A DNA stretch of 64,000 bases from Selaginella moellendorffii (GCF_000143415.4 NW_003314342.1:99299-163298), one strand, 5' to 3'. Counted from the stretch's first letter, positions 22,991 through 58,801 are shown. The notes: generated from the sequence alone by a model not told the origin. Numbers and translations are program-made.

Positions 22991-23188
22991 ATGGAGAACA
23001 AGGCTTTGTTGGTGTTGTTTTTGGCGCTCGCCATGTTTGTGATGATGCTGGCCATGGGCGTGGACGTGGGAGGAATCGCAAAGGCTGCTGCCCAGCGCTG
23101 CCAGTCGGGGTGGTATTGGTATGACAATAGTTGCCACCGTTGCCCGAGGGGTTGGGTCTGGCGCAACAATCGCTGCTGGCGCAGATGA
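22991..23188 (+). CDS. Small secreted Cys/Trp/Arg-rich peptide precursor (type A), intact copy 1
   Basis: 65 aa: hydrophobic signal MENKALLVLFLALAMFVMMLAMG, spacer, QRCQSGWYWYDNSCHRCPRGWVWRNNRCWRR; TATAAAT at 22922; AAATCATGG start context. Confidence 0.85.
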   Translation: MENKALLVLFLALAMFVMMLAMGVDVGGIAKAAAQRCQSGWYWYDNSCHRCPRGWVWRNNRCWRR

Positions 23189-24379
23189 AACCTCTCGTTT
23201 CACGGGGTAAGCCCAAGTTAAGAATTAGCATCGTAATTGCCTTTGATTTCATCATTCTACAGTGCCGAAGGTCTGGAAACAGGAATAAGACACTGATAAT
23301 GTGTTTTCTGTATCGTGCAATGCTGGATGGCATTGCATGAGTTCCAGCAATAATATATAAATTGTCCAGGCCTTGATATAAAATATCTGAACCTCTCTTT
23401 CTCCTCCTCCTCTCTCTCCAAATCCCTAGATTTTCAATCAATCAATCGCTGATGCTCCACTCCCACCGCTAGATGTGCCTGGGCCTGGTTGTGATGCTCC
23501 AATCGACTCTTGTCAATCGATCAATCCGGTATGGCCAAGCGCTACCACGGAGGATGTTACTGGAATGGTCTTCGCTGCATGCAATGCAATTGTACGGAGA
23601 TCCCATCAATGCCAGCAAGGAGAATGCCAGCCGCTGCATCCGCTGAAGAATCGCCAAAGTTTGCCCTGGAAGAACCACGGGAGCATCTCGAATCGTGAAA
23701 ATTTGGGTTGACAGCGTGGATGAGATATAGAGAATAAGAGTGAATGAAAATGTTTTGGAGTCCTATGAGTCTTCTGTGATGTGTTTGAAATTTTCATGCC
23801 CTGAAAATGTCAGTCTTTTCTGGAAAGTTGTTGAACGTTCGCAATGACCAGAATGACAAGAAAATTTAGAACATGAAAAATAAAAAAGAAAGAAAGCCAA
23901 CTAAGAAATCTCGAGTCAATCTATCCATGGGTGTAAAGCGATCTAGCCGTACAATTGGACCTCACAATATGAAATAAACTTTTTTTTTTTTTTTTGGTCA
24001 AAAGTTGTGCCTTCTTAGTCTCGACGTGGTACTTGGATAAGCAACAAGATGGAAATATGACGCAGCTGTGGAGACAAGTTTTTCAACGAATCTGATCTCT
24101 TTCCCAAGACAGTCTAGCAACTACATACACCCTCTCTCGATCGAAAATGAAATGAAACACACACTTCTCTTCTAAAGATCGACAAGATCCAACTGTTTAT
24201 TTAGATTTTTGTTCTTTTAGTGGCAGTGAAGTCTATAGCAACGCGTGGACGCGTGGTAATGCATGAGTTCAACAATAATAAATATTATAAACTGTGAAAA
24301 AACAAAAAGTGTTGTCTTTACTCATCTGGATTCACAGCTTCATTTAGTGTTGTTGTGGTGTCCCAGCATTATAAGAAAA

Positions 24380-24488
24380 GGAACTAATACCAAGCAACAA
24401 ACCGTTGAGGTTTCTCCCACATCCTCTCCCATGGCCAGCATCAAAACCATGGCAGGCGCCAGAAGCAACCATGCCATGTTCTTCATGA
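24380..24488 (-). pseudogene. Peptide-family paralog relic (signal region only)
   Basis: MKNMAWLLLAPAMVLMLAMGEDVGE-like; mature region lost. Confidence 0.55.
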
Positions 24489-25289
24489 TTTAGTGCAAAA
24501 ACTCATAAATCGTGAGTAAAATGTAAAATCACGTGGCAATGTTTGGCGGTTTCCATGAGGTAAAATGCAGAATCACACGGGGTTTCATTGGCATGAAAGG
24601 TTTTATGATGGATCTCAGTGTCATACAAGAGTTGATCACTTATTTCACTCAGAAATCTAGCCATTTAGAACTCATTCCATTTCTCTATTTCATCTCTAGA
24701 GATCAGAAAAACAGTAGAAGGAAGCATTTGCTAAGCTTGGCTGAAACAAAAGAAGGCATAGAATCTTGAGGTAAGAACATTCTTGTAAAAAGGAAAGCAT
24801 TTCTTTCTTTTATGTTTTCTAGATCCTACCACAAGATTTACTGTTACATGATGTAACAGTAAATCTTACATCAACTGCAAATCTCAGCCAGCACAGCATG
24901 CATACTCTAAGGAAATCTCACGATACTTCCTTGGCTGGTCCAAAAGGTACAACAACCAACCGGTGTACCAAAGAGCAAAAGAACATTATTTCCAAGAGCT
25001 CGTGTGCAAACACTTGTAGCTCCTGGAGGCTATCCCGTTCGTCACTGCATCCAGAGGTACACTATAAGTGTGTAGCTTCCTCTGAGGTCTTAACTGAACC
25101 ACTTTCCAGCCCGTTGTGCAGAAAATTTGTCAGGCAGCTCATGTCAGTGAAAGCCAATGTCCCAGACCTGCAAAGGTAAAAGATGGTCAGGTTAAAAGAA
25201 AACGAAGTGCAACTTACTTCTCTGCTGTATTTCCAAGTTGTTTCCAGGCATCTATAACAAGTTCAACCTGCTACCAAAGCATGTGCTCA

Positions 25290-26820: not shown

Positions 26821-26944
26821 CCACTGGAATTGTTTGAGTTAGAACTTATCCACACTAGTCAGTGTTTTTCTAAATTCTTCTTCATATTTATTACGGCTTT
26901 GAATACAATAGAAATCCCTGATTCATTAATCTTTCATTTCAGCC

Positions 26945-27163
26945 ATGCAACTCCAGAACACACAGTGAGTTGTAGCCAAAAATTTGCAAAAGATCTCTGA
27001 AACCACCACACAGAGGAGCTTATAGCTCTCTGGTTGTGACATATCAATGCCATCATCAAGGGCATCGGTCATACCAATACCAGGCAGCAACGGTTGCGAT
27101 TTCTCCCATATCCACTCCCATGGCCAGCATCATCACAACAAACCATGGGCCCATGTTCTTCAT
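26945..27163 (-). pseudogene. Peptide-family paralog type B, disrupted
   Basis: MKNMGPWFVVMMLAMGVDMGEIATVAAWYWYDRCP then stops; mirrors 59261-59455. Confidence 0.6.
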
Positions 27164-27641
27164 GATTTGCTGCAAAAACTAAGAGAAACAATCTCTAGTA
27201 TACTGGAGAGAAGTGGTTTGATCTGTGACCCCCATCATAGTTATAGCTCAAGACGCTAGAATGCTCTTGGGAAGGCATCTTGAATATTTGAAAGTTAGTT
27301 GTTCCATGTTTGTCAATTCCTTCTCTTTTCTATAATGCTGGGGCATAGAACGAAGTTTGCAACACGAAGAAGGAAGTAAAAGTGCCACACAAGAAAAGCT
27401 CAGTCGGCAGGCCTGGAGTCAAAATGAAGTAAACTCCTGAAATGAAGCTATGAATCCAGATGGGAAATAGAGAGTACAGACATTTTTATCAAGGCCTGGA
27501 CAGTTTCTATATTATTGTTGGATCTCATGCAATCAGTGTTCTTTTATTCTTCTTTCCAGACCCTGGCACTGCAGAATGATGAGTTCAGAAGAATTATGAT
27601 GCTCACTCTTAAGTTGCGCTTACCCCTTGAAACGGGAGGTT

Positions 27642-27839
27642 TCAGTTGCGCCAGCAGCGATTGTTGCGCCAGACCCAACCCCTCTGGCAACGGTGGCAGC
27701 TGTTGTCATACCAATACCACCCCGACTGGCAGCGCTGGGCAGCAGCCTTTGCGATTCCTCCCACGTCTACGCCCATGGCCAGCATCATCACAAACATGGC
27801 AAGCGCCAAAAACATCACCAAGAAAGCCTTGTTCTCCAT
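27642..27839 (-). CDS. Small secreted Cys/Trp/Arg-rich peptide precursor (type A), intact copy 2
   Basis: 65-aa ORF ending QRCQSGWYWYDNSCHRCQRGWVWRNNRCWRN; TATA at ~27927-27933 (minus). Confidence 0.85.
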   Translation of the reverse strand: MENKAFLVMFLALAMFVMMLAMGVDVGGIAKAAAQRCQSGWYWYDNSCHRCQRGWVWRNNRCWRN

Positions 27840-28129
27840 GATTTGCTGCTCAGACTAAGATCAAGTAGGCTTGTATATTAGAGAGAAATGATTTGGTCTG
27901 TGAGGCAGGACTCAGGAGGGGCTCGTATTTATAGCTCGAGGCAGCTCAAAATGTTAGATGGAGGCTGGAGAGTTGTCTTGGGACGGCTTCGCTTATTTCT
28001 CATCTCTGGAAGAATATTTGAAAGTTAGTCCAGTAAAAGTGGTTCCGTGTTTGCCAATTCTTTTTTTCCTATAATGCTTCTCCAACCCTTCAAATCCTTA
28101 TCTCCAAAGTCACTCTAGCATTCCTTTTC

Positions 28130-28370: not shown

Positions 28371-28524
28371 AATACAGGCTGCAACGGTTAATGAGATATT
28401 ATTCGATAAATTTTTTATTCTTATTTAATTTACTTATAATTATTTCTGTTATTCTATTAATTAAATCTTGTTATTGTACTTTCGCATATGTTACATTGAT
28501 AGAAAGTTAACCGGCCAAATGGAC

Positions 28525-30259
28525 TCATCGCAGCTGCTTTTGCAGATTCGACACGAGCACGTAGAGCGCCGAGTCCCCTGGTTTCATCTCCAAGAGTTTC
28601 TCTGCGGCACGAGCTGCAACATCGATGTTCTTGTCGCTACCATGAACTTTGCAAGTGCTGATCAAGCTCTTCCACGCGAGGAAATGCGGCTGGAAGGGCA
28701 TCACCAGCAGCAGACCTTCAGCCTCGGCAACCAGCCCGGCTCGTCCCAGCACATCTGCCATCGCCTGGAAGTGAATCACATTTGGAGAAATGCTGTACTC
28801 GGCCACCATAGATCGAAAGTAGTCGAGTGCCACACGGAGCTTCCCACCGTGATTGCAAGTCAGGAGAGAATCGCCTGGAAATTTATCTCGTTTCTCGCCT
28901 CGCCCTCCATCCCCATGCTACCAAAAAAACTCAGCAGCTTTTCGCTCATGGCCATTCTGTGCGCAGCCATGGATCATCGCGTTCCACGACACAATGCTCC
29001 GATCAGGCATTGTGGAGAAGATCTTCCCGACCTGCAAGAGATTCCCCCTTCGATCGCTCGCGGCAAGGATCGCGTTCCAGCTCGCTGTGTCTCTCACCGG
29101 CATGGCTGTGAAGAGCTCCCGCGCTTGGACGAGGCAATTGCTCTGGATGTAAGCTCCCAGCATCGTGTTCCACGCGGCGCTATCGTGCTGTGGCATTTTG
29201 TCGAACAAGGCTCTGGCATCGATCAAGCTCCCGTGCAAAGCAATTGCCGCCACCATTGCCGTCCAAGCGACGAGATAGCGCTGTGGCATCCGTGCAAACA
29301 TCTTCATGGCTTCTTCGAGGTGGCCGTTGTTGGAGTAGGCCAAAATCGTGGCAGTCCACACCACGTCGTCGTGATAAGGAGCTTGATCGAAGAGAATGCG
29401 AGCTTCTTCGAGCTGGTTTCTCTCGGCCAGTGCTGTGATCATTGTCGACCACGATGCAACGTTCCTCTGTGGCAGGGCATCAAACAGAGACCTTGCTTCT
29501 TGCAGGCTGGACGCGTTCCACGAGATTAAGTCGCGGTGTGCCATTTTACTGAAAAGCTCCTTGGCTTTTTCAATATGCCCAATCTAAGCATATGCAGTGA
29601 CAAGAACAGTCCATCCCAGCTCGTTGGTTTTGGGAATTCTCATAAACAAATTTATTGCATCGTTAACAAGAAATTTTCTTGCAAACCCAGTAACCAGAAC
29701 AGTCCAAGAAACTATGCTGTGTTCTAGCATTCCATCGAAGACCTGGCTCCTGATCCATATGCCCATTATGGGCACATGCTGTAAGTAGCGAGTTTTAGCA
29801 AACTACATCCCATTCTAGAACCTGATCAAAACATGCTTGGCATTCCTCCACGTTTCCCCGGTTTGCATGAGCCGAGAAAACAGTGACCCATGCAACAATA
29901 TTTTTTTGTGGCATCTGGTCAAACAGCTCTTTTGCTTCCTCGAGATACCCATTCTGGGCATAAGCGCCAAGCATCAAGTTCCAGGAGAATCTGTTGGGCT
30001 CGTGGATGCTGATAAACACCTGCCATGCTCGATCCGCGCGCTCCCACCTTCCATAGAGCTGGATGAGAAGATTTGCGAGGTACCTGTTGGATTGGTGGTG
30101 GCTGCTGCGCGTGGAGGCTGGCGCAAATCTCTTTCCTGGATGCAAGCTGTGAGGAGTTGCGCGTAGTCGTTCGAGCGACGATGCGCGCCGCTCTAGATCG
30201 TCCACGGCCTGTTCTAGAGGCTTCAATCGGTACGTCTGCGTGGTAGTGATTCCTCTCAT
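28525..30259 (-). pseudogene. PPR-B paralog, frameshifted
   Basis: Same N-terminus MRGITTTQTYRLKPLEQ as 38862-40640 but split over ORFs 29795-30259, 29584-29775, 28918-29544, 28525-28833. Confidence 0.9.
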
Positions 30260-30499
30260 CGATAATTTCCTTTGCTTTTACCGGTGTTTTCCTGGAATAC
30301 AGTAAACTCTCTCGACTGACAAGATAGAGCTTTGATTTGTCAATGGCGAATAAGCGTTTCCGAAGGCGACATTTCATATGGGGCAATTGGATTTCTGCTG
30401 TAAAAAGGAAACGGTGGTCACAGTGTGTTCCCTCAACTTGGTCTTCATAGTTATCACGGTTTGAATTATAAATTGCTAAATAATTTCCGAGAGGAAACT

Positions 30500-30600
30500 T
30501 ACGATCCATACCAGCGCCATCCTCGAGGTGCGATTCCTCCCACGTCCACGCCCATGGCAAGCATTACAAACGTGACGAGCACCGAAAACAACAACTTTTT
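30500..30600 (-). pseudogene. Peptide-family type C relic
   Basis: MGVDVGGIAPRGWRWYG-like; start lost. Confidence 0.55.
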
Positions 30601-30694: not shown

Positions 30695-30901
30695 ATGGAG
30701 AACAAGGCTTTTTTGGCGCTCGCCATGTTTTTGATGATGCTGCCCATGGGCGTGGACGTGGGAGGAATCGCAAAGGCCGCTGCCCAGCGCTGCCAGTCGG
30801 GGTGGTATTGGTATGACAATAGTTGCCACCGTTGCCAGACGGTTGGAGCTGACGCAACAATCGCTGCTGGCGCAACTGAAACCTCTCGTTTCACGGGGTA
30901 A
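30695..30901 (+). pseudogene. Type A peptide gene frameshifted in the second repeat
   Basis: MENKAFLALAMFLMMLPMGVDVGGIAKAAAQRCQSGWYWYDNSCHRCQ then out-of-frame TVGADAT...; shortened signal peptide. Confidence 0.8.
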
Positions 30902-31199
30902 GCCCAAGTTAAGGAGCAGCATCGTAATTGATTTCATCATTCTGCAGCGCCAAAGACACTGATACCGTGCTTTCTGTATCGTGCGATGCTGGATGAGTTC
31001 TAGCAATAATATATAAATTGTCCAGGCCTTGATATAAAATGTCTGAATCTCTCTTGCTCCTTCTCCTCTCTTCTCCAAATCCCTCGACTTTCAATCAATC
31101 CATCGCTAGATTGATCGATTGCTCCAATGATCGGCAAGCAACAAGACTCGATTGGAGCATCACAACCAGGCCCAGGCACACCTAGCAGTGGGAGGGGAG

Positions 31200-31335
31200 G
31201 TTGGGGGGATGGTGCAGCACTGCCGCAAAGGATGGTACTGGAATGGATTTCGCTGCATGCACTGCAATTGGTACGGGTATGACAACAGAGGCCATCGATG
31301 CCAGCAAGGGGAATAGCAGCCGCTGCCTCCGGTGA
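31200..31335 (+). other. Module D: three-repeat Cys/Trp peptide-coding segment without a signal peptide
   Basis: HCRKGWYWNGFRCMHCNWYGYDNRGHRCQQG; other copies ~23535-23646, 48345-48443, 52105-52219 (+) and 55040-55170 (-). Confidence 0.6.
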
Positions 31336-33901: not shown

Positions 33902-33959
<58 letters not shown>

Positions 33960-36029: not shown

Positions 36030-38253
36030 CCCCTTGAAATTAGAGGTTTCAATTGTGCCAGCTCCAACCCCTCTAGCAACAGTGTCAAACCACTCTAGCT
36101 GATAGTGTTGTAGCAACCTTTGTGATTCCTCCCATGTCCATGCCCCATGGCCAGCATTATCACAAACATGGAAAGCATGAGATGTCTAGATTACAAAAGG
36201 CTTTGATTTGATCATAGTTGTTGGTTGTCTGGTTTTCTTAGTATTTGCCTTTGTAAAGGTGCATAATCCCGATTTGTGGAGGTCCTGGCATGTTTGGTTC
36301 AGGCTGCAATCTTTCAGCTCTCCAAGCTTACTAGAACCACCTATTGTTCTTTGGAATGGGGTTGTTTTTGCAACAATTTACATTTGAGTTGACACTAAAC
36401 TTTAAAGAGTTTTTTTGAGAATGTATGTATTTTTAGCTTTGCATATGAAAATAACCATTGTTCATTCGGTGCCCAGTTCTATCGAGTGTGTTCATGATGA
36501 TTTAGAAGGATTTAGAAGGACCTTAAAGAACTGGTTACGAGTGACATTTTCCATGGCTAGTTCCCTAGCATAAGCATCCATATGAAAATTTTGAAGATGA
36601 GCACTTTGCATTATTCTTCAATGTTTATGATGTTGAGGGCTTCTTTGTGGTTAGGTAATGTGGCAGATCACCAATTCAATTTAGCTCTGCCTCTCAAGAC
36701 ACATGAGAGCCATTCCAAACATATGTCCTAATGAGTTAGTTCATTTTGTGGATCATTCATTGGTCCATATTCCAGCACGATGCCAAGAACTAGATTGCAC
36801 CAAGTAGAATGTTGTTTGTGATTATGCAGCGCGTTGAGAAGGATAGTTTCCTGCTTTCAAACATGTTCTTCTAATTTCCTGATTTCAACCTGTCTTCCAC
36901 CTCACTAGACAATCATGCTTGGAGACACTCTAATTGCTTGAGACCCCTTTCCATCGATGGTGGAAGCTAAAGGATAATATCATTTGCACTCTCCTTAATA
37001 TGATCTTTGGACAAATCTTTAAGGCAAGACATGCCAGAAGACTACACCCTTGAATATAAGGAACTCCCAAATCTCTGTCACGCCAAGCCAATCCATATTA
37101 TCCAAATGGAGAAGAAGATGGCAAATGTAGACCCTTATGTACCACAGAATTGATATGCCCACTTCTATTGGTTTTAACAATAAATACTAGACAAACTGGA
37201 AAGGGACCTAGTGGAGTGGCAATGGAGGGGCACCACATGCAAAGATTTCTTTCAATATGAGACCAAGCTTGGCAAAAAATTGATCTATTTCCTAGTCTAG
37301 TCTATGTTCATTATAAAAGCAAGAGCTCAACATATCCACTCCTAGAACTATTCAGAATGTGTGACGAAAATCTAAAAAAGTTGTTGGTCTGCCAAAACCC
37401 AATACTTCACGTATCTTGCCTAGTAAGAGCACCTCCCCTCACTGACAGCAATCCACCTCCTAGACATAGCTTGCAAAGTCTATGGAGCAACTAAGACACA
37501 ATGCCATAAATTTTGGGAATGTTTTGCTGCATATAAGGTGTGGGAAGGCTCCATAACAATTCTCAAACAAACCTCTCAAGGTGGCATGGTTATGACTTAC
37601 AAATCAGTGCTTTGGGAAGCTTCCTCTAAGGAAAAATTAAATGCAAAACACATGGAAGTGGAGACACAACAAAAACCTACACTTTGATCAACTTAACCAT
37701 TCATGTATACATATTACACATCTCCACCACAAGCTCTTTGATGTTTTCAAGGCATGTACTTTTGCAGAGATTTAGAAAGTTTGTTGTGCCAAGCTGTTCA
37801 ATAACAAAAACCTCTTGGCATGAGCAATGATCTCAAAGGTTTGGTCCCCTTGATTGTCTCTTTAGCAGCCCAACTATGTACAATTACCAAAAGAGGAGAC
37901 AAGGAAAAATTGATAGAGAATGCACTCTATGGCTATTTTTTAGAGACAAAGGCTAGAGGAGATCCACTATGGCTATGGTAGCACATGTCTAAGAATGACG
38001 GTATGTGTGCCCCCCCTTCCCCCAACACACACACACACACCCCAACAAGTTTATCAAGTTCCTCATAGAGGACTTAATGCACATGGAATACATCAATTCC
38101 AATTCAACTTTGTCCCTCTTGCCCCATCCCTCCCCGCGATTTTGAACATGTTGAAACCAAACTCTATGATTTTATAAAGGCTAAATAATAAAAACCCCGT
38201 TGACAAAAATGGCAAGCACCAAAAACATCACCAAAAAAGCCTTGTTTCTTATG
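36030..38253 (-). pseudogene. Type A peptide gene split by a LINE insertion (3' half ~36030-36177, 5' half 38203-38253)
   Basis: The two halves join into one gene; promoter/TATA retained at ~38334-38340. Confidence 0.75.
36178..38202 (+). mobile_element. 5'-truncated, 5'-inverted L1-like LINE with ~16-bp TSD
   Basis: TSD ACAAACATGGAAAGCA (36162-36177) / ACAAAAATGGCAAGCA (38203-38218); plus-strand zf-RVT-like CKVYG...HKFWECFAAYKVW (~37470-37545); minus-strand RT C-terminal motifs (KLSFSTR...IRTYVWNG...RAKLNW) in ~36180-36950. Confidence 0.8.
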
Positions 38254-38861: not shown

Positions 38862-40640
38862 TTATAAAGGTTGACGCAGCTGCTTTTGCAGATTTGACAT
38901 GAGCACGTAGAGCGCCGAGTCCCCTGGTTTCATCTCCGAGAGTTTCTCTGCGGCACGAGTTGCAACATCGATGTTCTTACCGCTACCATGAACTTTGCAA
39001 GCGCTGATCAAGCTCTTCCACGCGAGGAAATGCGGCTGGAAGGGCATCACCAGCAGCAGACCTTCAGCCTCGGCAACCAGCCCGGCTCGTCCCAGCACAT
39101 CTGCCATCGCCTGGAAGTGAATCACATTTGGAGAAATGCTGTACTCGGCCACCATAGATCGAAAGTAGTCGAGTGCCACACGGAGCTTCCCACCGTGATT
39201 GCAAGTCAGGAGAATCGCTTGGAAACTTATCTCGTTTCTTGCCTCGCCCTCCATCGCCATGCTGCCAAAAAACTCAGCAGCTTTTCGCTCATGGCCATTC
39301 TGTGCGCAGCCATGGATCATCGCGTTCCACGACACAATGCTCCGATCAGGCAATGTGGAGAAGATCTTCCCGGCCTGCAAGAGATTCCCCCTTTGAGCGC
39401 TCGCGGCAAGGATCGCGTTCCAGCTCGCGGTGTCTCTCACCGGCATGGCTGTGAAGAGCTCCCGCGCTTGGACGAGGCAATTGCTCTGGATGTAAGCTCC
39501 CAGCATCGTGTTCCACGCGACGCTATCGTGCTGTGGCATTTTGTCGAACAAGTCTCTGGCATCGATCAAGCTCCCGTGCAAAGCAATTGCCGCCACCATT
39601 GCCGTCCAAGCGACGAGATCGCGCTGTGGCATCCGTGCAAACATCTTCATGGCTTCTTCGAGGTGGCCGTGGTTGGAGTAGGCCAAAATCATGGCAGTCC
39701 ACACCACGTCGTCGTGAGAAGGAGCTCGATCAAAGAGAATGCGAGCTTCTTCGAGCTGGTTTCTCTCGGCCAGCGCTGTGATCATTGTCGACCACGATGC
39801 AACGTTCCTCTGCGGCATGGCATCAAACAGAGACCTTGCTTCTTGCAAGCTGGACGTTGCCGCTAGCATTGCGTTCCACGAGATTATGTCGCGGTGTGGC
39901 ATTTTACTGAAAAGCTCCTTGGCTTTTTCCATATGCCCAATCTGGGCATATGCAGTGACAAGAACAGTCCATCCCAGCTCGTTGGTTTCGGGGATTCTCA
40001 TAAACCAATTTAGTGCATCGTTAACAAGACCTTTTCTTGCATATCCAGTAACCATAACAGTCCAAGAAACTATGTTGTGTTCTAGCATTCCATCAAAAAC
40101 CTGGCTTGCCTGATCCATATGCCCGTTATGGGCATATGCTGTAAGTAGCGAGTTCCAGCAAACTACATCCCATTCAGGAACCTGATCAAACAATGCTTGG
40201 CATTCCTCTAAGTTTCCATGGTTTGCATGAGCCGTGATAACAGTGACCCATGCAACAATATCCCTTTGTGGCATCTGGTCAAACAGCTCTTTTGCTTCCT
40301 CAAGATACCCATTCTGGGCATAAGCGCCAAGCATCAAGTTCCAGGAGAATCTGTTGGGCTCGTGGATGCTGATAAACACCTGCCATGCTCGATCCGCGCG
40401 CTCGCACCTTCCATAGAGCTGGATGAGAAGATTTGCGAGGTACCTGTTGGATTGGTGGTGGCTGCTGCCAAGGATGAGCGCGTGGAGCCTGGCGCCTTGA
40501 CGCAAATCTCTTTCCTGGATGCAAGCTGTGAGGAGTTGCGCGTAGTCGTCGTCGAGCGACGATGCGCGCCGCTCTAGATCGTCCACGGCCTGTTCTAGAG
40601 GCTTCAATCGGTACGTCTGCGTGGTTGTGATTCCTCTCAT
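38862..40640 (-). CDS. PLS-class PPR protein with E domain (PPR-B), the only intact copy
   Basis: 592-aa ORF of tandem ~31-aa PPR motifs; HFQAMADVLGRAGLV...WKSLISACKVHG...LYVLMSN; no DYW. Confidence 0.92.
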   Translation of the reverse strand: MRGITTTQTYRLKPLEQAVDDLERRASSLDDDYAQLLTACIQERDLRQGARLHALILGSSHHQSNRYLANLLIQLYGRCERADRAWQVFISIHEPNRFSWNLMLGAYAQNGYLEEAKELFDQMPQRDIVAWVTVITAHANHGNLEECQALFDQVPEWDVVCWNSLLTAYAHNGHMDQASQVFDGMLEHNIVSWTVMVTGYARKGLVNDALNWFMRIPETNELGWTVLVTAYAQIGHMEKAKELFSKMPHRDIISWNAMLAATSSLQEARSLFDAMPQRNVASWSTMITALAERNQLEEARILFDRAPSHDDVVWTAMILAYSNHGHLEEAMKMFARMPQRDLVAWTAMVAAIALHGSLIDARDLFDKMPQHDSVAWNTMLGAYIQSNCLVQARELFTAMPVRDTASWNAILAASAQRGNLLQAGKIFSTLPDRSIVSWNAMIHGCAQNGHERKAAEFFGSMAMEGEARNEISFQAILLTCNHGGKLRVALDYFRSMVAEYSISPNVIHFQAMADVLGRAGLVAEAEGLLLVMPFQPHFLAWKSLISACKVHGSGKNIDVATRAAEKLSEMKPGDSALYVLMSNLQKQLRQPL

Positions 40641-40874: not shown

Positions 40875-41010
40875 CCAGTTACGGTGGCAGCTGCCGCCAT
40901 ACTAGCGTCATCCTCGAGGTGCGATTCCTCCCACGTCCACTCTCATGGGCAGCATCAGCACAAACATGGCAAGCACCGAAAACAACACCAAGCAAGCCTT
41001 GGTTCTCCAT
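40875..41010 (-). pseudogene. Peptide-family type C pseudogene
   Basis: Signal-like region frameshifted; VDVGGIAPRG..*YGGSCHR. Confidence 0.65.
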
Positions 41011-41699: not shown

Positions 41700-42805
41700 A
41701 CAGTCTCAGGGGATAGAGATCACAGTAGGACTCCAAAACATTTTCGATCACTCTTATTCTATATATCTCATCCACTCGAGGCTGAGGCTCGCAAACTTTG
41801 GCAATTTTTCAGCGGATGGAGCGGCTGCCATTCCAAGGAGAGATTCAGACGTTTGATATCAAGGCCTGGACAATTTATATATTATTGCTGGAACTCATGC
41901 TGCCAGCATCTCACGATACAGAAAACACGTTATCAGTGTCATTATTTCTTGTTCCCAGACCCTCGGCACTGAAGAATGATGGAATCAAAGGCAATTATGA
42001 TTCTGATTCTTAATTTGGGCTTACCCCGTGAAACGAGTTGCGCCAGCTCCAACCCCTCTGGCAACGGTGGCAACTATTGTCATACCAATACCACCCCGAC
42101 TGGCTCCCACGTCCACGCCCATGGCCAGCCTCATCACAAACATGGCGAGCACCAAAAACAACATGAAGAAAGCCTTGTTCTCCATGATTTGCTGCTCAGA
42201 CTAAGAAAAGTAATCTTGTTATATTAGTTTGATATGTAATATCTCTCCAACCATTCAAATGAAGATCATTAAATCGCCATTCCTCTTCTAGCGTTGCTAA
42301 AACTTTAGGAGTTCATACCACAAGCTAGCAGATAGAGAAAGCCAGGGAGTTTGAAAGCAGCACATGTTCTTGTAAGACCCTCAGCCCGTGTTAAGGGCTG
42401 GAGTGGTTTGGTATTTCCATGGAAAATTACATACTCTCTCACTTATGTTGTCTCTTTGTCTCCACGCTCTCTCGGTCATCATCTAGTTCTGGTTGCCCGC
42501 TTGAATCTTGGTGAATAGCAAGTAGATAGGATGGGAGAAAGTTTATACTCCTCTTCCTGGCTGGCTCCAGCACCACCACCAGCAGTGGCAGCAGCAGGAG
42601 GAGTATGTCTATCATGCCTCTTCTTCGTGGCAATCCATCCCAATTTTGCCCCCAAGTACTGTTGCCCAATGCCAACAGCAGTGGCAGCAGCAACACTACG
42701 GCGCCCTTCTCCCGCTGAAGCGTCTATGCCCTGCGATGGCTGAGGCCAAAGCATTTGATGTCCTGGATTGAATGTGGCATGGTGATTTTGACGATGCTAG
42801 GCCAT
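41700..42805. repeat. Innermost inverted-repeat arm (partner ~46998-48600; direct copy of the partner at ~22268-23800)
   Basis: GTGGCATGGTGATTTTGACGATGCTAGGCC (~42775-42803) mirrored by GGCCTAGCATCGTCAAAATCACCATGCCAC (~46998-47028). Confidence 0.75.
42030..42185 (-). pseudogene. Type A peptide gene with internal deletions
   Basis: Spacer and first Cys deleted, 3' end deleted. Confidence 0.75.
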
Positions 42806-43499: not shown

Positions 43500-43678
43500 A
43501 CACACTGTGAGTTGTATGCAAAAGATCTCCAAAACCACCACAAAGAGCTCTCTGGTGCCGCCATATCAGTGCCACCATCAAGGGCATCATCGTACTAATA
43601 CCAGGCAATTTCTCCCACATCCACTCCCATGGCCAAAAACCATGGCAAGCGCCAGAAACAACACCATGTTCTTCATGA
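43500..43678 (-). pseudogene. Peptide-family type B relic
   Basis: Homologous to 26945-27163. Confidence 0.55.
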
Positions 43679-44101: not shown

Positions 44102-44281
44102 TCAGTTGCGCCAGACCCAACCCCTCTGGCAATGGTGGCAACTGTTGTCATACCAATACCTCCTCGGCTGGCAGTGTTGGGCAGCAGCCTTTGCGATTCC
44201 TCCCACGTCCATGCCCATGGCCAGCATCATCACAAACATGGCAAGCGCCAAAAACATCACCAAGAAAACTTTGTTCTCCAT
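44102..44281 (-). CDS. Shortened, divergent type A peptide (59 aa), possibly a pseudogene
   Basis: MENKVFLVMFLALAMFVMMLAMGMDVGGIAKAAAQHCQPRRYWYDNSCHHCQRGWVWRN*; last Cys lost by an 18-bp deletion. Confidence 0.6.
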   Translation of the reverse strand: MENKVFLVMFLALAMFVMMLAMGMDVGGIAKAAAQHCQPRRYWYDNSCHHCQRGWVWRN

Positions 44282-47853: not shown

Positions 47854-48051
47854 ATGGAGAACAAGGCTTTGTTGGTGTTGTTTTTGGCGCTCGCCATGTT
47901 TGTGATGATGCTGGCCATGGGCGTGGACGTGGGAGGAATCGCAAAGGCTGCTGCCCAGCGCTGCCAGTCGGGGTGGTATTGGTATGACAACGGTTGCCAC
48001 CGTTGCCAGAGGGGTTGGAGCTGGCGCAACAATCGCTGCTGGCGCAACTGA
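47854..48051 (+). CDS. Type A secreted peptide precursor, intact copy 3
   Basis: 65 aa ending QRCQSGWYWYDNGCHRCQRGWSWRNNRCWRN; TATAAAT at 47784. Confidence 0.85.
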   Translation: MENKALLVLFLALAMFVMMLAMGVDVGGIAKAAAQRCQSGWYWYDNGCHRCQRGWSWRNNRCWRN

Positions 48052-49204
48052 AACCTCTCGTTTCACGGGGTAAGCCCAAGTTAAGAATCAGCATCGTAAT
48101 TGCCTTTGATTTCATCATTTTGCAGTGCCAAGAAAGAATAAAGACACTGATAACGTGTTTTCTGATCGTGATGAGTTCCAGCAATAATAAATAAATTGTC
48201 CAGCTTGATATAAAAAGTCTGAATGTCTCTTGCTCCTCCTCTCTTCTCCAAATCCCTCGACTTCCAATTAATACATCGCTGGATTGATCGATTGCTCGAC
48301 TCGATTGGAGCGTCACAACCAGGCCCAGGCACACCTAGCTCACCAAGCGCTGCCGATGGATTTCGCTGCGTGCAATACAATTGGTACGGGTATGACAACA
48401 GTTGCCATCGATGCCCGTGAGGGTGGCGCGCAGCCGCTGCTGAAGAATCGCCAAAGTTCGCTAGCCTGGTACCTCGAAGAACCACGGGAGCGCATCTCGA
48501 ATCATGAAAAGTTGGGCTGACAGCGTGGATGAGATATATTGAATAAGAGTGAACGAAAACGTTTTGGAGTCCTATGAATCTTCAGTGACCTCTATTCATG
48601 TGTTTGAAATTTTCATGCCCGTGAGACTGTCAATGTGTTTTCTAGAAAGTTGGTTCACATTTAATATCAAAAAAATTTAGAACGGGTCAAATCTATATGT
48701 TTTTCTTAGTCTCGACGTGGAACTTGGAAAAGCAACAAGAAGGAAATAAGACGCAGTAGTGGAGACAAATTTTTCAACAAATCTGATCTCTTTCCCAAGA
48801 CAAAGTCTAGCAATTAGATACACCGACCACGTCCCCTCTCTCGATCGAAAATGAAATGAAACCTTCTAAAGATCGTCAAGATCCAGCTATTTATTTGGAT
48901 ATTTGTCCTTTTCAGTGGCAGCAATGGCGCGTGGTGATGCATGAGTTTCAATAATATATATTATATAAACTGTGCCTTTACTCATCTGGATTCATGTTGT
49001 TCTATGTCCTAGCATTATAGAAATAGAAAAGGAATTGACAAACACGGAACGATTCCTCGACTAACTTTCAAAGGACAAAGTGATGCCGCCCCAAGAGACG
49101 CCACAGCATTGCATGCTGCCTCCAGCTACAAATACGAGCGGCCTCACAGATCAAATTACTTCTCTCGAATATACTCGTTGAACTCTTAGTTTTAGCAGCA
49201 AATC

Positions 49205-49330
49205 ATGAAGAACCAAGGCTTGTTTTCGGTGCTTGCCATGTTTGTGCTGATGCTGGCCATGAGAGTGGACGTGGGAGGAATCGCACCTCGAGGATGGCGC
49301 TAGTATGGCGGCAGCTGCCACCGTAACTAG
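49205..49330 (+). pseudogene. Peptide-family type C pseudogene
   Basis: MKNQGLFSVLAMFVLMLAMRVDVGGIAPRGWR*YGGSCHRN*. Confidence 0.7.
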
Positions 49331-49419
49331 AAAGCTAGCTCCTCTCTGTGATCGTAAGTTTCCTCTCGGCAATTTTGAATGTATAATTCAACTATGAAGA
49401 ACAAGTTGAGGGAACACAC

Positions 49420-50960: not shown

Positions 50961-51629
50961 ACGTCACATGAGTCCATTTGGCAGGTTAACATTAAAGAGT
51001 CAACAAGTATAACTTTAACAACAACATATAATTAATAGAATAACATTCTATTATTAACATTCTTTAACTTAAATAAGAAAAACAATTTTAATGAATAAAA
51101 TCTTGATAATTATTGATATCACTTTCATTATTGCTCTAGAATGTCCAAGAGATTGTCAAGAGCCTGCCAGTGAGAAGAGACGATGTAGCATTTACCACTT
51201 TGATTAATGTTGCGGGTGACTGGAAGCGGCCGTACTGAGTCTGTGGTCGAGAAGGAAGACAAGGTATTAGGTTCGTGTTCAGTATATTAGCATGGAATTT
51301 CTATGGAACTTTGAATCAAACTCTTGTAAAGTTTTTGCAAAGCTAGAAGAGGAATTCTAGAGTGACTTTGGAGATAAGGATTTGAATGGTTGGAGAAGCA
51401 TTATAGGAAAAGAAGAATTGGCAAACACGGAACCACTTTTACTGGACTAACTTTCAAATATTCTTTCAGAGATAAGAAATAAGCAAAGCCGTCCCAAGAC
51501 AACTCTCCAGTGTCCATCTAACATTTTGTGCTGCCTCGAGCTATAAATACGAGCCTCTCCTGCCTCACAGATCAAACCATTTCTCTCTAATATACAAGCC
51601 TACTTGATCTTAGTCTGAGCAGCAAAATC

Positions 51630-51827
51630 ATGGAGAACAAGGCTTTCTTGGTGATGTTTTTGGCGCTTGCCATGTTTGTGATGATGCTGGCCATGGGCGT
51701 GGACGTGGGAGGAATCGCAAAGGCTGCTGCCCAGCGCTGCCAGTCGGGGTGGTATTGGTATGACAACAGTTGCCACCGTTGCCAGAGGGGTTGGGTCTGG
51801 CGCAACAATCGCTGCTGGCGCAACTGA
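51630..51827 (+). CDS. Type A secreted peptide precursor, intact copy 4
   Basis: 65 aa, same protein as 27642-27839; TATAAAT at 51542. Confidence 0.85.
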   Translation: MENKAFLVMFLALAMFVMMLAMGVDVGGIAKAAAQRCQSGWYWYDNSCHRCQRGWVWRNNRCWRN

Positions 51828-53045
51828 AACATCCCATTTCACGGGGTAAGCCCATGTTAAGATTCAACATCGTAATTGCCTTTGTTTTCGTCATTCTGCA
51901 GTGCCAAGAAAGAATAAAGACACTGTAACGTGTTTTCTGATCGTGATGAGTCACAGCAATAATAAATAAGTTGTCCAGCTTGATATAAAAAGTCTGAATG
52001 TCTCTTGCTCCTCCTCTCTTCCAATCAATGCATCGCTGGATTGATCGATTGCTCGACTCGATTGGAGCGTCACAACCAGGCCCAGGCACACCTAGCTCAC
52101 CAAGGCGATGGTGCAGCGCTGCCGATGGATTTCGCTGCGTGCAATGCAATTGGTACGGGTATGACAACAGTTGCCATCGATGCCAGCGAGGGTGGCGCTC
52201 GAACGGGAGCCGCTGCTGAAGAATCGCCAAAGTTCGCTAGCCTGGTGCCTCGAAGAACCACGGGAGCGCATCTCAAATCATGAAGAGTTGGGCTAACAGC
52301 GTGGATGAGATATATCGAATAAGAGTGAACGAAAAAGGTTTTGGAGTCCTATGAATCTTCTGTGATCTCTATTCATGTGTTTGAAATTTTCATGCCCGTG
52401 AGACTGTTAATGTGTTTTCTAGAGGTTGGTTCACTTGTAATATCAAAAAAATTTCAAATCTTTGGACTAAAATTTATTAGTATATAATATTAAATAAAAT
52501 AATATATGTTTTTGTCATGAAAAGTTTGCCATCTTAGTCTCGACGTGGAACTTGGAAAAGCAACAAGAAGGAAATAAGAAGCAGTAGTGGAGTCAGAATT
52601 TTCACCGAATCTGATCTCTTTCCCAAGACAAAGTCTAGCAATTACATACACCGACCATGTCCCCTCTCTCGATCGAAAATAAAATGAAAGACTTCTAAAG
52701 ATCGTCAAGATCCAGCTATTTATTTGGATATTTGTCCTTTTCAGTGGCAGTGAAGTCTATAGCAATGGCGCGTGGTGATGCATGAGTTTCAATAATATAT
52801 AATATATAAACTGTGCCTTTACTCATCTGGATTCATGTTGTTCTATGTCCCAGCATTATAGAAAAGAAAAGGAATTGACAAACACGGAACGATTTCCTCG
52901 ACTAACTTTCAAAGGACAAAGTGATGCCCCCCCAAGAGAAGTTACAGCATTGTATGTTGACTCCAGCTATAAATACGAGCGGCCTCACAGATCAAATCAC
53001 TTCTCTCGAATATACTCGTTGAACTCTTAGTTTTTGCAGCAAATC

Positions 53046-53181
53046 ATGGAGAAACAAGGCTTGCTTGGTGTTGTTTTTGGTGCTTGTCATGTTTGTGCTG
53101 ATGCTGGCCATGAGAGTGGACGTGGGAGGAATCGCACCTCGAGGATGGCGCTAGTATGGCGGCAGCTGCCACTGTAACTAG
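53046..53181 (+). pseudogene. Peptide-family type C pseudogene
   Basis: Frameshift near start and TAG at the Trp position. Confidence 0.65.
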
Positions 53182-53424
53182 AAAGCTAGCTCCTCTCTGT
53201 GATCGTAAGTTTCCTCTCGGCAATTTTGAATGTATAATTCAACTATGAAGAACAAGTTGAGGGAACACACTATGACCGCCGTTTCCTTTGTACTGCACAA
53301 ATCCAATTGGCCCATGTACGCTTATTCACCATTGACAAATCAAAGCTCTATCTTGTCAGTCGAGAGAGTTTGCTGTATTCCAGGAAAACGCCAGTAAAAG
53401 CAAAGGAAATGATCGATGCCAAAG

Positions 53425-54000: not shown

Positions 54001-55516
54001 TAGAGGCCTGGAAACAACAGGAAGAGAAGTAAGCTGGTTCTCTTTCTTTTTATCTTTTACCTTTGCAGGTCTGGGACTTTGGCTTTCACTGACAAGAGCT
54101 GCCTGACAATTTTTCTGCACAACAGGCTAAAAGTGGTTTAATTAGTGTACCTCTGGATGCAAGCCAAGGAAGTATTGTGAGATTTTCTTCGTGTAATGTT
54201 GTTCTGGCTGAGATTTGCAGTTGATGTAACAGTAAAATCTTGTGATCGGATATCTTGTGATCTAGAAAACATAAAAGAAAGAAATGCATTCTTTGTTACA
54301 AGAATGTTCTTACCTCAAGATTCTATGCACTTTCCTAGTCCTAGTATATTTTAGGTCTAACAAAAGTGATAATGATTATGCAAACTTTTGGAAGGATAAA
54401 TTTAAATAGTATACCAAGATGCATTTTTTTATTATATTTAAAAGAAAACCTCTTGAACACAGAGGTTTCCTCAACTGAACACAATGCTAGAGTGCATCAC
54501 TTTATCCTTTGAAAGTTAGTCAAGGAAATCGTAGCAACACACTAAATCAAAGTACAGACAACATTTTTTGTTTTTTCACAATATTATATTATTGTTTAAT
54601 TCATGCATCACCATGCGCCATTGCTATTGGCTTCACTGCCACCAAAAAGAAAAAAAATCCGTGTTTTATATACATGGTGTATGTACTTGCTAGACTTTGT
54701 CTTGGGAAAGAGATCAGATTGTTGAAAATTTTGTCTCCACTTGTCATATTTCCATCTTGTTGCTTTTCCAAGTTCACTTTCATTGACAAGAATATATATT
54801 AGTTTATTTAAAGCTGAACGCTTTACACCCTTGGATAGATTGACTCATAGTTGGCTTTCTTTCTTTTTTATTTTTCATGTTCTAAATTTTCTTGTCATTC
54901 TGGTTATTGCGAATGTTCAACAACTTTCCAGAAAACACATTGAGAGAATTCCAAACACGTATATAGAGATCGACTCCAAAATATTTTCATATTCTATGTA
55001 TCTCATCCACGCTGTCAACCCAGCAAGCTTTGGCGATTCTTCAGCGGAGGCAGCGGCTGCTATTCCCCTTGCTGGCATCGATGGCCTCTGTTGTCATACC
55101 CGTACCAATTGCAGTGCATGCAGCGAAATCCATTCCAGTACCATCCTCTGCGGCAGCGCTGCACCATCCCCCCGACCTCCACTCCCACTGCTAGGTGTGC
55201 CTGGGCCTGGTTGTGATGATCCAATTGAGTCTTGTTGCTTGCCGATCATTGGAGCAATCGATCAATCTAGCGATGGATTGATTGAAAGTCGAGGGATTTG
55301 GAGAAGAGAGGAGAAGGAGCAAGAAAGATTCAGACATTTTATATCAAGGCCTGGACAATTTATATATTATTGCTAGAACTCATCCAGCATCGCACGATAC
55401 AGAAAGCACGTTATCAGTGTCTTTATTCTTGTTTCCAGACCCTTGGCACTGCAGAATGATGAAATCAATTACGATGCTGATCCTTAACTTGGGCTTACCC
55501 CGTGAAACGAGAGGTT

Positions 55517-55714
55517 TCAGTTGCGCCAGCAGCGATTGTTGCGCCAGCTCCAACCCCTCTGGCAACGGTGGCAACCGTTGTCATACCAATACCACCCCGA
55601 CTGGCAGCGCTGGGCAGCAGCCTTTGCGAGTCCTCCCACGTCCACGCCCATGGCCAGCATCATCACAAACATGGCGAGCGCCAAAAACAACACGAATAAA
55701 GCCTTGTTCTCCAT
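55517..55714 (-). CDS. Type A secreted peptide precursor, intact copy 5
   Basis: MENKALFVLFLALAMFVMMLAMGVDVGGLAKAAAQRCQSGWYWYDNGCHRCQRGWSWRNNRCWRN; TATA at ~55766-55772 (minus). Confidence 0.85.
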   Translation of the reverse strand: MENKALFVLFLALAMFVMMLAMGVDVGGLAKAAAQRCQSGWYWYDNGCHRCQRGWSWRNNRCWRN

Positions 55715-56389
55715 GATTTGCTGACAAACTAAGAGAAGAGAGAAGTAGTTTGATCTGGGGCTCATATTTATAGTTCGAGGCAGCTACAAAGTTGTCTTGG
55801 GACTCTGTAGTCAAGTTCCGTGTTCGGGAATTTCTTCTTTTTTCCAGCATTATAGAAAGAAGAAGAAATTCCCAAACACGGAACTCAAAGAGATAAGGAC
55901 TACGTCCTGCCTCATAGATTAAACCATAACAAGCTTACTAGCAGCAAAAAGGTTGCTCGTCACGTTTGTAATGCGCATGGGCGTGCACGTGGGAGGAATC
56001 GCACCTCGAGGATGGTGCTGGTATGGATCGTAAGTTTCCTCGCAGGGATTATTTAGCAATTTATAATCAAACCGTGATGACTATGAAGAACAAGTTGAGG
56101 GAACACACTGTGACCATCGTTTCCTTTTTACAGCAAAAATCTAATTGCCCCATATGAAATCCCGCCTTTGGAAACACTTATTCGCCATTGACAAATCAAC
56201 GCTCTATTTTGTGTCGAGAGAGTTAACTGTATTCCAGGAAAACGCCGGAAAAAGCAAAGGAAATGATCGATGAGAACGCAGATGTTAGAGGTAGAGATGA
56301 TGTGGCATGTAATTATGCACATTTACCATCCATATACAGTTGAAATACATAGAAAGTTCTTCCTCCTCCTGCGTGTCTCTTCGCTGCTA

Positions 56390-58012
56390 ACAATTGAAGC
56401 CTCTAGAACAGGCCGTGGACGATCTAGAGCCCGCGTGCATTGTCGTTCGACGACGACTACGCGCAACTCCTCACAGCTTGCATCCAGAAAAGAGATTTGC
56501 GTCAAGGCATCCTTCACCACCAATCCAGCAGGTACCTCGCAAATCTTCTCATCCAGCACTAAGGAAGGTGCGAGCGCGCGGATCGAGCATGGCAGGTGTT
56601 TATCAGCCATCCATGAGCCCAACAGATTCTCCTGGAACTTGATGCTTGGCGCTTATGCCCAAAATGCGGATCTTGAGGAAGCAAAAGAGCTGTTTGCCAC
56701 AAAGAGATATTGTTGCATGGGTCTCTATTCTCACGGCTCATGAAAACCGTGGAAACTTGGAGGAGTGCCAAGCATTTTTTTATCATGTTCCAAAATGGGA
56801 TGTAGTTTGCTGGAACTCGCTACTTACAGTATATGCCCATGGATCAAGCACGCCAGATCTTTGATGAAATGCTAGAACACAACACAGTTTCTTGGACTGT
56901 TATGGTTACTGGGTATGCAAGAAAAGGCTTTGTTAACGACGCGCTAAATGTGTTCATGAAAATCCCCGAAACCAACGAGCTCGGATGGACTGTTCTTGTC
57001 ACTGCATATGCCCAGCTTGGGCATATTGAAAACTCCAAGGAGCTTTTCAGTAAAATGCCACACCGCGACTTAATCTCGTGGAACGCAATGCTAGTGGCAA
57101 CGTCCAGCCTGCAAGAAGAGGTCTCTGTTTGATGCCATGCCACAGAGGAACGTTGCATCGTGGTCGACAATGGTCACAGCACTGGCCGAGAGAAACCAGC
57201 TCGAAGAAGCTCGCATTCTCTTCGATCGAGCTCCTTGTCACGACGACGTGGTGTGGACTGCCATGATCGTGGCCTACTCCAACCACGGCCACCTCGAAGA
57301 AGCCATGAAGATGTTTGCACGGATGCCACAGCGCGATCTCGTCGCTTGGACGGCAATGGTGGCGGCAATTGCTTTGCACGGGAGCTTGATCGATGCCAGA
57401 GCCTTGTTCGACCAAATGCCACAGCACGATAGCGTCGCGTGGAACACGATGCTGGGAGCTTACATCCAGAGCAATTGTCTCGTCCAAGCGCGGGAGCTCT
57501 TTGCGGCCATGCCAGTGAGAGACACAGCGAACTGGAACACGATCCTTGCCGCGAGCGCTGAAAGGGGGAATGTCTTGCAGGCTGGGAAGATCTTCTCCAC
57601 ATTGCCTGAACGGAGCATTGTGTTGTGGAACGCGATGGTTTTTGGCAGCATGGCGATGGAGGGCGAGGCGAGAAACGAGATAAGTTTCCAGGGAAATCTC
57701 CTGACTTGCAACCACGGTGGCACTCGACTACTTTAGAGCTATGGTATTTCTCCAAATGTGATTCACTTCCAGGCGATGGCAGATGTGCTGGGACGAGCCG
57801 GGCTGGTTGCCAAGGCCGAAGGTCTGCTGCTGGTGATGCCCTTCCAGCCGCATTTCCTCGCGTGGAAGAGCTTGATCAGCGCTTGCAAAGTTCATGGTAG
57901 CGGCAAGAACATCGATGTTGCAGCTCATGCCGCAGAGAAACTCTTGGAAATGAAACCAGGGGACTCTGGCGCTCTACGTGCTCATGTTGAATCTGCAAAA
58001 GCAGTCACATGA
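56390..58012 (+). pseudogene. PPR-B paralog with multiple frameshifts and deletions
   Basis: Fragments 56646-56864, 56833-57132, 57137-57736 and 57758-58012 tile PPR-B. Confidence 0.9.
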
Positions 58013-58603
58013 CTCCATTTGGCCGGTTAACATTAAAGAGTCAACAAGTATAACTTTAACAACATCTAATTAATAGAATAACATTAAGAAAAACAATTTT
58101 AATGAATAAAATCTTGATAATTATTGATATCACTTTCATTAATCGTTGCAGATTGTTCTGGAATGCCCAAGAGATTGTCAAGAGCCTGCCAGTGAGAAGA
58201 GACGATGTAGCATTTACCACTTTGATTAATGTTGCGGGTGACTGGAAGCGGCCGTACTGAGTCTGTGGTCGAGACGGAAGTTCTATGGAATTTCGAATCA
58301 AACTCTTGTAAAGTTTTGGCAAAGCTAAAAGAATGCTAGAGTGACTTTGGAGATAAGGATTTGAAGGGTTGGAGAAGCATTATAGGAAAAAGAAGAATTG
58401 GCAAACACGGAACCACTTTTACTGGACTAACTTTCAAATATTCTTTCAGAGATAAGAAATAAGCGAAGCCATCCCAAGACAACTCTCCAGCCTCCATCTA
58501 ACATTTTGTGCTGCCTCGAGCTATAAATACGAGCCTGGCTCACAGATCAAACCATTTCTCTCTAATATACAAGCCCGCTTGATCTTAGTCTGAGCAGCAA
58601 ATC

Positions 58604-58801
58604 ATGGAGAACAAGGCTTTCTTGGTGATGTTTTTGGCACTTGCCATGTTTGTGATGATGCTGGCCATGGGCGTGGACGTGGGAGGAATCGCAAAGGCTG
58701 CTTCCCAGCGCTGCCAGTCGGGGTGGTATTGGTATGACAACAGTTGCCACCGTTGCCAGAGGGGTTGGGTCTGGCACAACAATCGCTGTTGGCGCAACTG
58801 A
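58604..58801 (+). CDS. Type A secreted peptide precursor, intact copy 6
   Basis: 65 aa ending KAASQRCQSGWYWYDNSCHRCQRGWVWHNNRCWRN; TATAAAT at 58522. Confidence 0.85.
   Translation: MENKAFLVMFLALAMFVMMLAMGVDVGGIAKAASQRCQSGWYWYDNSCHRCQRGWVWHNNRCWRN

Follow-up and report, generated by a model that had tools for sequence, protein, structure and literature searches.

The stretch analysed here, 64,000 nucleotides of the genome of the spikemoss Selaginella moellendorffii (GCF_000143415.4, NW_003314342.1:99299-163298; hereafter the window), carries an amplified family of short genes for a Cys/Trp/Arg-rich peptide. Six intact open reading frames (ORFs) of 65 codons, referred to as A-type copies 1 to 6, were located by ORF listing and direct translation, and all of them are present at the positions given in an original prediction made from the DNA sequence (Table 1). 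Each copy was aligned together with 300 nt of its upstream and 400 nt of its downstream flank; as had been predicted, the TATAAATA box, which is a TATA box, and the AAATCATGG start context do not vary in this six-copy alignment. Upstream in-frame ATGs of copies 1 and 5 were considered as starts and rejected, since none of them is downstream of the TATA box or of the RNA 5' end. Neither the exact peptides nor an intact pentatricopeptide repeat (PPR) protein of 592 aa from the same window has an entry in a collection of 15 billion proteins, and they are therefore regarded as unannotated.

The precursor consists of a hydrophobic leader, a spacer of sequence VDVGGIAKAAA, and a 31-residue tail. The hydrophobic core of the leader spans residues 5-22 (Kyte-Doolittle >2.4), and candidate cleavage sites are AMG|V (23/24) and AAA|Q (34/35). 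The tail contains 5 Trp, 2 Tyr, 6 Arg and 1 Asp, and its Cys residues are spaced C-x10-C-x2-C-x10-C, both composition and spacing being as originally described; its computed mass is 4.1 kDa, its isoelectric point (pI) 9.7 and its net charge +5. Two tandem 14-residue units of pattern C-x2-G-W-x-W-x4-C make up the tail, and the pattern C-x3-W-x-W-x4-C-x2 is matched exactly by both. These units had been ascribed to a 42-bp internal duplication. The two units are indeed present, with 7 of 14 residues in common, yet they share just 25 of 42 nucleotides, so that no obvious DNA repeat is seen and the internal duplication is considered to be ancient. Substitutions among the copies are S13G, Q18P, V22S, R24H and N31R in the tail (tail numbering), all of which had been listed correctly, and five further ones, F6L, L7F, M9L, I29L and A33S, in the leader and spacer. 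The invariance claimed for the Cys and Trp residues and the Gly of the GW pairs holds across the six intact copies.

The A-type copies are bona fide, unannotated and transcribed RNA polymerase II genes. Whether transcripts exist at all, a question raised with the original prediction, is decisively answered by RNA-like contigs and by a spliced intron. About 20 public runs contain the stretch; they represent no fewer than seven studies and three coded organisms, and many have transcriptome-sized contig sets. Four runs (three coded organisms, four studies) were aligned to positions 51000-53400, the region of copy 4, with a likeness threshold of 85% for contig placement. Coverage is confined to ~51576-52423 in these four RNA-like runs, and 51486-51566 is uncovered in every run. 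The contigs start at ~51576, which is 27-34 nt downstream of the TATA box. Summed depth over the coding sequence (CDS) is ~4-6 thousand in runs X9 and X14 and ~8-9 x 10^5 in run X6, as compared with 0-25 over the neighbouring PPR 3' end (51081-51485). Past ~51970, near AATAAA-type signals, the depth drops ~20-fold, and the remaining signal ends at ~52423. In several RNA data sets from lycophytes, the peptide transcript appears to rank with the most abundant ones.

An intron in the 3' untranslated region (3'UTR) is removed from part of these transcripts. Its spliced 56-nt joint is present in X6 and X9 along with the unspliced form, so splicing is partial. The splice sites are kept in all six copies, and a length of 56 nt is in keeping with Selaginella introns. 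The GT..AG orientation of this intron identifies the + strand as the sense strand at copy 4. Variants seen in the RNA are diagnostic of three copy types, namely that of copy 1 (51767 T), that of copies 3 and 5 (51768 G, 51795 A, 51796 G) and that of copies 2 and 4 (reference), and therefore transcription involves at least three sequence types. Over the peptide CDS each of the three antisense frames is open as well, with ORFs of up to 200 aa (22973-23441, 47749-48334 and 51587-52230 on the - strand, and the equivalents of these in other copies); these ORFs are most likely a by-product of codon composition, and the orientation of the intron rules out the long ones as real genes.

The tail is predicted to fold as two β-hairpins. 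In an AlphaFold2 model of the precursor, computed with a small family alignment (mean predicted local distance difference test, pLDDT, of 75.5), residues 2-34, which comprise the leader and spacer, form one helix, and the tail strands are situated at residues 41-44, 47-50, 55-58 and 61-64. The model of the tail alone (pLDDT 84) further indicates the same two hairpins, with DN and NN in the turns. This arrangement is at odds with the single hairpin of tachyplesin or arenicin type that had been proposed, and the two-Cys units of the microbial proteins described below suggest intra-unit disulfides. It is thus probable that C1 pairs with C2 and C3 with C4, so that every hairpin has a disulfide of its own, as do the A1 module of TNF receptors (TNFR) and the N-terminal hairpin of long-form C-type lectin domains (CTLDs). 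The pairing is favoured over a cross-braced one because the microbial single units contain two Cys and because unit 1 fits the C0-C0' hairpin of a CTLD, 6a7t_A, with 0.7 Å over 15 residues and 53% identity, a non-significant match. The non-significant Foldseek list also includes cysteine-rich domains of mGluR (1.5-1.9 Å, 29-32 columns), EphA2, IGF1R, R-spondin Fu, CD40/TNFR1 and CTLD N-terminal hairpins. An exhaustive VIA search placed mGluR3 residues 511-549 (Z 2.5), the viral TNFR-like UL144 (Z 2.4) and the cysteine-rich domain of the sweet receptor at the top; superposition of the whole tail on mGluR and UL144 gave 1.8-2.0 Å over 31 residues. The shape search in Atlas returned generic hairpin matches, with NCD3G, Lectin_C and EGF-like entries.

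The Cys spacing had been placed outside the known plant antimicrobial peptide (AMP) families, and no curated match was found in Pfam, PDB or Atlas; searches of these three and with Foldseek likewise gave no strong match to a characterised family. In Pfam scans the one family reported was DUF4215, below the 27-bit cut-off (precursor, E 0.58; tail alone, E 0.059), while TNFR_c6, Furin-like, NCD3G and DUF5874 were unreported even at E up to 10. A B-type relic of the family (Table 1) matches TNFR_ELAPOR1_6th with E 1.1, below the gathering score. The PDB sequence search found no significant match and no classical plant AMP or cysteine-rich peptide (CRP) family, the ESM Atlas feature search gave no meaningful match (best score 0.76), and a word-indexed homologue search with the 65-aa precursor returned none. 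Searches of the literature revealed no paper that deals with the motif or with peptides of this sort from Selaginella.

An exhaustive phmmer search of 1.8 billion representatives gave six matches, among them P0001 and P0004, which were discarded as low-complexity repeat artefacts, one Selaginella paralogue (P0002) and three microbial motif matches. The paralogue, XP_024531936.1 of S. moellendorffii, is annotated as 'putative pectinesterase 11' and is the sole plant relative found (60% identity). Its first 54 residues comprise a homologous leader, a VGVDVGGIANAAA spacer and 1.5 units, followed by an acidic poly-Asp linker and then a pectinesterase domain; it may be a real chimera, or two adjacent genes, one of them for a small peptide, may have been fused in the gene model. 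A profile search with the family alignment retrieved four small microbial proteins and no plant protein. P0005, P0007 and P0009, from uncultured microbes, are 83-85 residues long and carry a C-terminal membrane helix and a two-unit segment, which contains a GWYWYDNxCHRC stretch identical to that of the plant peptide. P0007 (L001:3761-4018) and P0005 (L002:638-895) are encoded on environmental contigs of densely packed small genes; no confident Pfam match was obtained on the contigs with such look-alikes (weak precomputed matches only), and PHROGs gave nil on the look-alike contig. In P0003, P0006, P0010 and P0011 this motif occurs as single C-x11-C units with acidic surroundings, P0003 being composed of five units and a Fib_succ_major domain. 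CBM_14 was matched by P0005 alone (E 0.0096, below cut-off), and scarabaecin matched the tail profile weakly (E 1.1), its segment CPKGKVWNGFDC aligning to unit 2. The microbial look-alikes may reflect homology or convergence, and the GWYWYDNxCHRC unit may be an unrecognised mini-domain.

Comparison with known systems places the unit among simple hairpin modules. One-disulfide hairpins of TNFR, where they are named 'A1 module', of furin-like regions and of class-C G-protein-coupled receptors share with the tail the pattern C-x2-G-aromatic-x-aromatic-x4-C and the CxxC junctions between units. In contrast, no HMM (hidden Markov model) of these families is reached at cut-off and Z is 2.1-2.5; moreover, their modules sit in receptor ectodomains, whereas the spikemoss peptide is a free-standing two-unit form enriched in Trp and Arg. 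The N-terminal C0-C0' hairpin of long-form CTLDs has the same C-x2-G-W-x6-C pattern and C-x10-C spacing. Nevertheless, the peptide possesses the hairpin motif only, in 31 residues rather than a fold of ~120, with matches at E >=0.15; the full CTLD fold with its WIGL motif and C1-C4/C2-C3 disulfides, which defines C-type lectins, is absent. The chitin-binding hairpin of scarabaecin, tachycitin and CBM14 is alike in being a C-x10-C hairpin with Gly and aromatic residues, the matches (E 0.01-1.3) being below cut-offs. Tachyplesin, arenicin, Ib-AMPs, indolicidin and the puroindoline Trp domain are likewise small, cationic, Trp/Arg-rich and disulfide-constrained; the hairpin of tachyplesin-type peptides is single and cross-braced, while the spikemoss peptide has two in tandem, probably stapled within each unit, and no sequence kinship with them. 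By HMM and cysteine motif the peptide falls outside the defensin, thionin, hevein, knottin, snakin/GASA, nsLTP, alpha-hairpinin, RALF and EPF families. The model suggests that each unit is equivalent to a generic hairpin module with one disulfide, such as occurs in TNFR, in furin-like regions and at the N-terminus of CTLDs, although it belongs to none of these curated families, and the view of an 'undescribed system' standing alone is to this extent not supported.

These observations are taken together in a proposal for the function. The 65-residue precursor, with an N-terminal signal peptide, the spacer and a tail of pI ~9.7, would be exported to the apoplast or cell wall, and the product would be made in very large amounts. 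Each tail unit would fold as a short β-hairpin and display Trp/Tyr ladders flanked by Arg; this Arg/Trp surface would act stoichiometrically, by binding to microbial membranes and disturbing them and/or by stacking on glycans of the wall, e.g. chitin. Arg/Trp-rich cationic peptides are typically membrane-active antimicrobials, and the aromatic strips of small carbohydrate-binding modules stack on polysaccharide. A stoichiometric extracellular effector fits best because of the secretory-type leader, disulfides that need the secretory pathway, the +5 charge, the Trp/Tyr ladders, the many near-identical expressed copies and the very high transcript levels. We consider that the family most likely encodes a defence peptide, of a kind so far undescribed in plants, and give a probability of about 0.5 to the specific proposal that it acts on microbial envelopes via membrane perturbation and/or glycan stacking. 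The earlier suggestion of a lineage-specific antimicrobial or glycan-binding peptide is thus borne out with regard to a transcribed, amplified and lineage-restricted family, while the activity keeps the standing of a proposal.

A non-killing role, in which the peptide is a wall- or glycan-binding mini-lectin or a structural wall component whose Trp/Tyr ladders stack on plant-wall or microbial chitin/glucan, is possible, although we think it rather unlikely. Very high expression from multiple copies would suit a stoichiometric or structural role. The weak sequence matches to the scarabaecin hairpin and, for P0005, to CBM14 point in the same direction; nevertheless, all of these have E >0.009, under the curated cut-offs. 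Unit 1 resembles the CTLD N-terminal hairpin, which is however not the sugar-binding part of C-type lectins. Finally, the one paralogue with an annotation has a wall enzyme, pectin methylesterase, as its fusion partner, but that fusion may be an artefact of the gene model.

Several points weigh against the defence proposal. The hydrophobic leader is long (~18-19 residues) and may be a signal anchor instead of a cleaved signal. The run types were guessed as RNA, with the coverage pattern and splicing as backing, and contig depth reflects expression only crudely. With regard to the fold, Foldseek gave no match at E <1, and none of the fold and family matches reaches significance (Foldseek E >1, Z <=2.5, Pfam E >=0.06). 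The remaining points concern selection. About 12 non-synonymous and 6 synonymous changes among the six copies correspond to an omega of ~0.5, which is not significantly below 1, the changes being too few for an informative dN/dS. The divergence of the A-type CDS (mean 3.8%) is no lower than that of PPR pseudogenes in the same window from the intact PPR copy (3.7-5.5%). The density of frameshifts in these pseudogenes predicts 0.7-1.0 hit per 198-nt copy, and the survival of six out of ten A-type copies is therefore just modestly better than neutral. In addition, the 5'UTR and CDS of copy 3 cluster with those of copies 1 and 5, and its downstream part with that of copy 4; this mosaic grouping indicates gene conversion, which could likewise keep the CDS uniform.

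The same selection data lend themselves to an explanation in which the genes are transcribed and no peptide function exists, either because young duplicates are open by chance and subject to gene conversion, or because the RNA is the product. Four of the ten A-type copies and all B- and C-type copies are dead, and the open antisense frames indicate that open frames are cheap in this composition. We judge this explanation improbable on the following grounds. The ORF is fragile, with 5 TGG, 4 TGY, 2 TAT and 4 CAG codons one step from a stop; it is nonetheless intact in six copies, and the relics display the W-to-stop hits that are expected of such an ORF. Pairwise, the CDS differ at 2-12 of 198 sites (1-6%) with zero indels, whereas the BLAST-aligned flanks (<=700 nt) differ by 5-13% with 3-33 gap openings; Fisher's test gives P <0.05 in 10 of 15 pairs, which are not independent. 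Every Cys, Trp and Gly is invariant, and the architecture of signal, spacer and unit is retained in the 60%-identical paralogue. Rfam gave no match within the window, which speaks against a known structured RNA. The evidence for selection on the intact CDS is thus moderate. As for the claim that the genes are kept at high dosage, it stands in that the CDS have fewer changes and indels than the flanks, and falls short in the non-significant omega and in a retention modestly above neutral.

It is very doubtful that the peptide is secreted as a signal to a receptor kinase, like the cysteine-rich peptides EPF, RALF and LURE, since signalling peptides are seldom so highly expressed or kept as many near-identical copies, Pfam scans revealed no similarity to known signalling-peptide families, and the cationic Trp/Arg character is more typical of effectors, although the small secreted Cys-rich architecture would be compatible and non-scaffold residues do differ between copies. 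A reading as a burpitide or other ribosomally synthesised and post-translationally modified peptide (RiPP) precursor was dropped as being without any supporting feature.

Lineage-specific cysteine-rich peptide families are common in plants, and the novelty of the putative defence peptide therefore lies in its scaffold and abundance and not in the kind of system. Catalogues of plant AMPs and cysteine-rich peptides draw nearly all their entries from seed plants and from a few cysteine motifs, and are blind to an unannotated spikemoss family that matches no HMM; these genes show how many short genes the Selaginella annotation still misses. If active, the peptide would shed light on innate defence in a vascular plant of an early-diverging lineage and add a new minimal tandem Trp-hairpin scaffold (TNFR-A1/CTLD type) to peptide engineering. 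Because a 31-residue two-disulfide peptide is easy to synthesise, direct tests of its antimicrobial activity, of its binding to chitin or wall and of its disulfide map are feasible. We also note a bolder and, in our estimate, unlikely possibility, in which the 14-residue C-x2-G-W-Y-W-Y-D-N-x-C-H hairpin is a self-sufficient mini-domain that lycophytes have turned into an extremely abundant new class of host defence; if so, the identical GWYWYDNxCHRC stretch and two-unit layout in membrane-anchored small proteins of uncultured microbes or of their viruses would imply deep common descent or transfer between plants and their microbiota.

Besides the intact copies, ~20 further pieces of the family were found in the window by sensitive tblastn with the precursor, in agreement with the more than a dozen relics originally reported. 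They were sorted into 4 broken A-type copies, at least 4 B-type copies, 5 C-type copies and 6 short fragments (Table 1). The B relics are decayed three-unit paralogues located ~370 nt downstream of an A copy, and the five C relics have in-frame stops common to all. Self-comparison of the window reveals a repeated module in the order [C relic]-[PLS/E-class PPR gene]-[A gene]-[B relic], which occurs in direct and inverted orientation with 80-96% identity. In all, the family numbers ~25 copies within one segmental duplication of 40 kb that includes the PPR genes. Birth and death of copies, along with some gene conversion, would account for its evolution.

Table 1. Peptide genes, relics, transcript features and PPR genes in the window (positions counted from its first nucleotide; variants in precursor numbering)
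Feature	Position	Strand	Remarks
A-type copy 1	22991..23188	+	intact CDS; Q52P, N65R
A-type copy 2	27642..27839	-	intact CDS; protein identical to that of copy 4
A-type copy 3	47854..48051	+	intact CDS; S47G, V56S; variant type present in RNA contigs
A-type copy 4	51630..51827	+	intact CDS; RNA contigs aligned to this copy
A-type copy 5	55517..55714	-	intact CDS; L7F, I29L, S47G, V56S
A-type copy 6	58604..58801	+	intact CDS; A33S, R58H
TATAAATA box (TATA box) of copy 4	51542..51549	+	identical in 6/6 copies
Main transcript of copy 4	51576..51985	+	~54-nt 5'UTR, CDS, 3'UTR; AATAAA-type signals near 51913 and 51961
Read-through 3' extension	51986..52423	+	lower level; crosses B relic
56-nt GT..AG intron in 3'UTR	51846..51901	+	18 nt past stop codon
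A-type relic	19767..19934	+	in-frame stop, 3-codon deletion; directly downstream of PPR gene 17781-19691
A-type relic	30695..30838	+	4-codon deletion in leader; frame lost past unit 1
A-type relic	42034..42185	-	spacer and start of unit 1 deleted; last Cys gone
A-type relic	44105..44281	-	59-codon ORF; premature stop ahead of last Cys; unit-1 GW gone
B-type relic	31182..31310	+	decayed three-unit paralogue; stops upstream of units
B-type relic	48364..48426	+	downstream of copy 3
B-type relic	51998..52222	+	downstream of copy 4; signal peptide gone
B-type relic	55066..55194	-	downstream of copy 5
C-type relic	30502..30594	-	leader and VDVGGIAP, then truncated unit; upstream of decayed PPR copy
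C-type relic	40881..41006	-	upstream of intact PPR gene; in-frame stops as in other C relics
C-type relic	49205..49324	+	tblastn
C-type relic	53050..53172	+	tblastn
C-type relic	55956..56030	+	tblastn
Leader-only family fragment	24415..24486	-	tblastn
Short family fragment	27068..27136	-	tblastn
Short family fragment	36052..36181	-	with stops; tblastn
Short family fragment	38185..38252	-	downstream of intact PPR gene
Short family fragment	43583..43667	-	tblastn
Leader fragment	59285..59332	+	tblastn
Intact PLS/E-class PPR gene	38862..40640	-	592 aa; co-duplicated with peptide genes; context, outside the peptide system
Intact PPR gene	17781..19691	+	636 aa; second intact PPR copy
Decayed PPR copy	~28400-30330	-	5-8 frameshifting indels
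Decayed PPR copy	~49380-51100	+	5-8 frameshifting indels
Decayed PPR copy	~56250-58080	+	5-8 frameshifting indels

In run X6 alone, a contig depth of ~5.7e4 was observed at 53025-53105, where the leader of a C relic (53050-53172) is situated; the signal probably represents cross-mapped leaders of expressed paralogues, and not expression of the relic. The best annotated matches of the 592-aa PPR protein are S. moellendorffii proteins with ~36% identity. Between positions 10000 and 20000 the window contains long ORFs without a Pfam match, e.g. 14133-15464 (- strand, 443 aa) and 10376-11323 (+ strand, 315 aa), and the G+C content of this part is ~50%, as compared with 31-44% in its surroundings.

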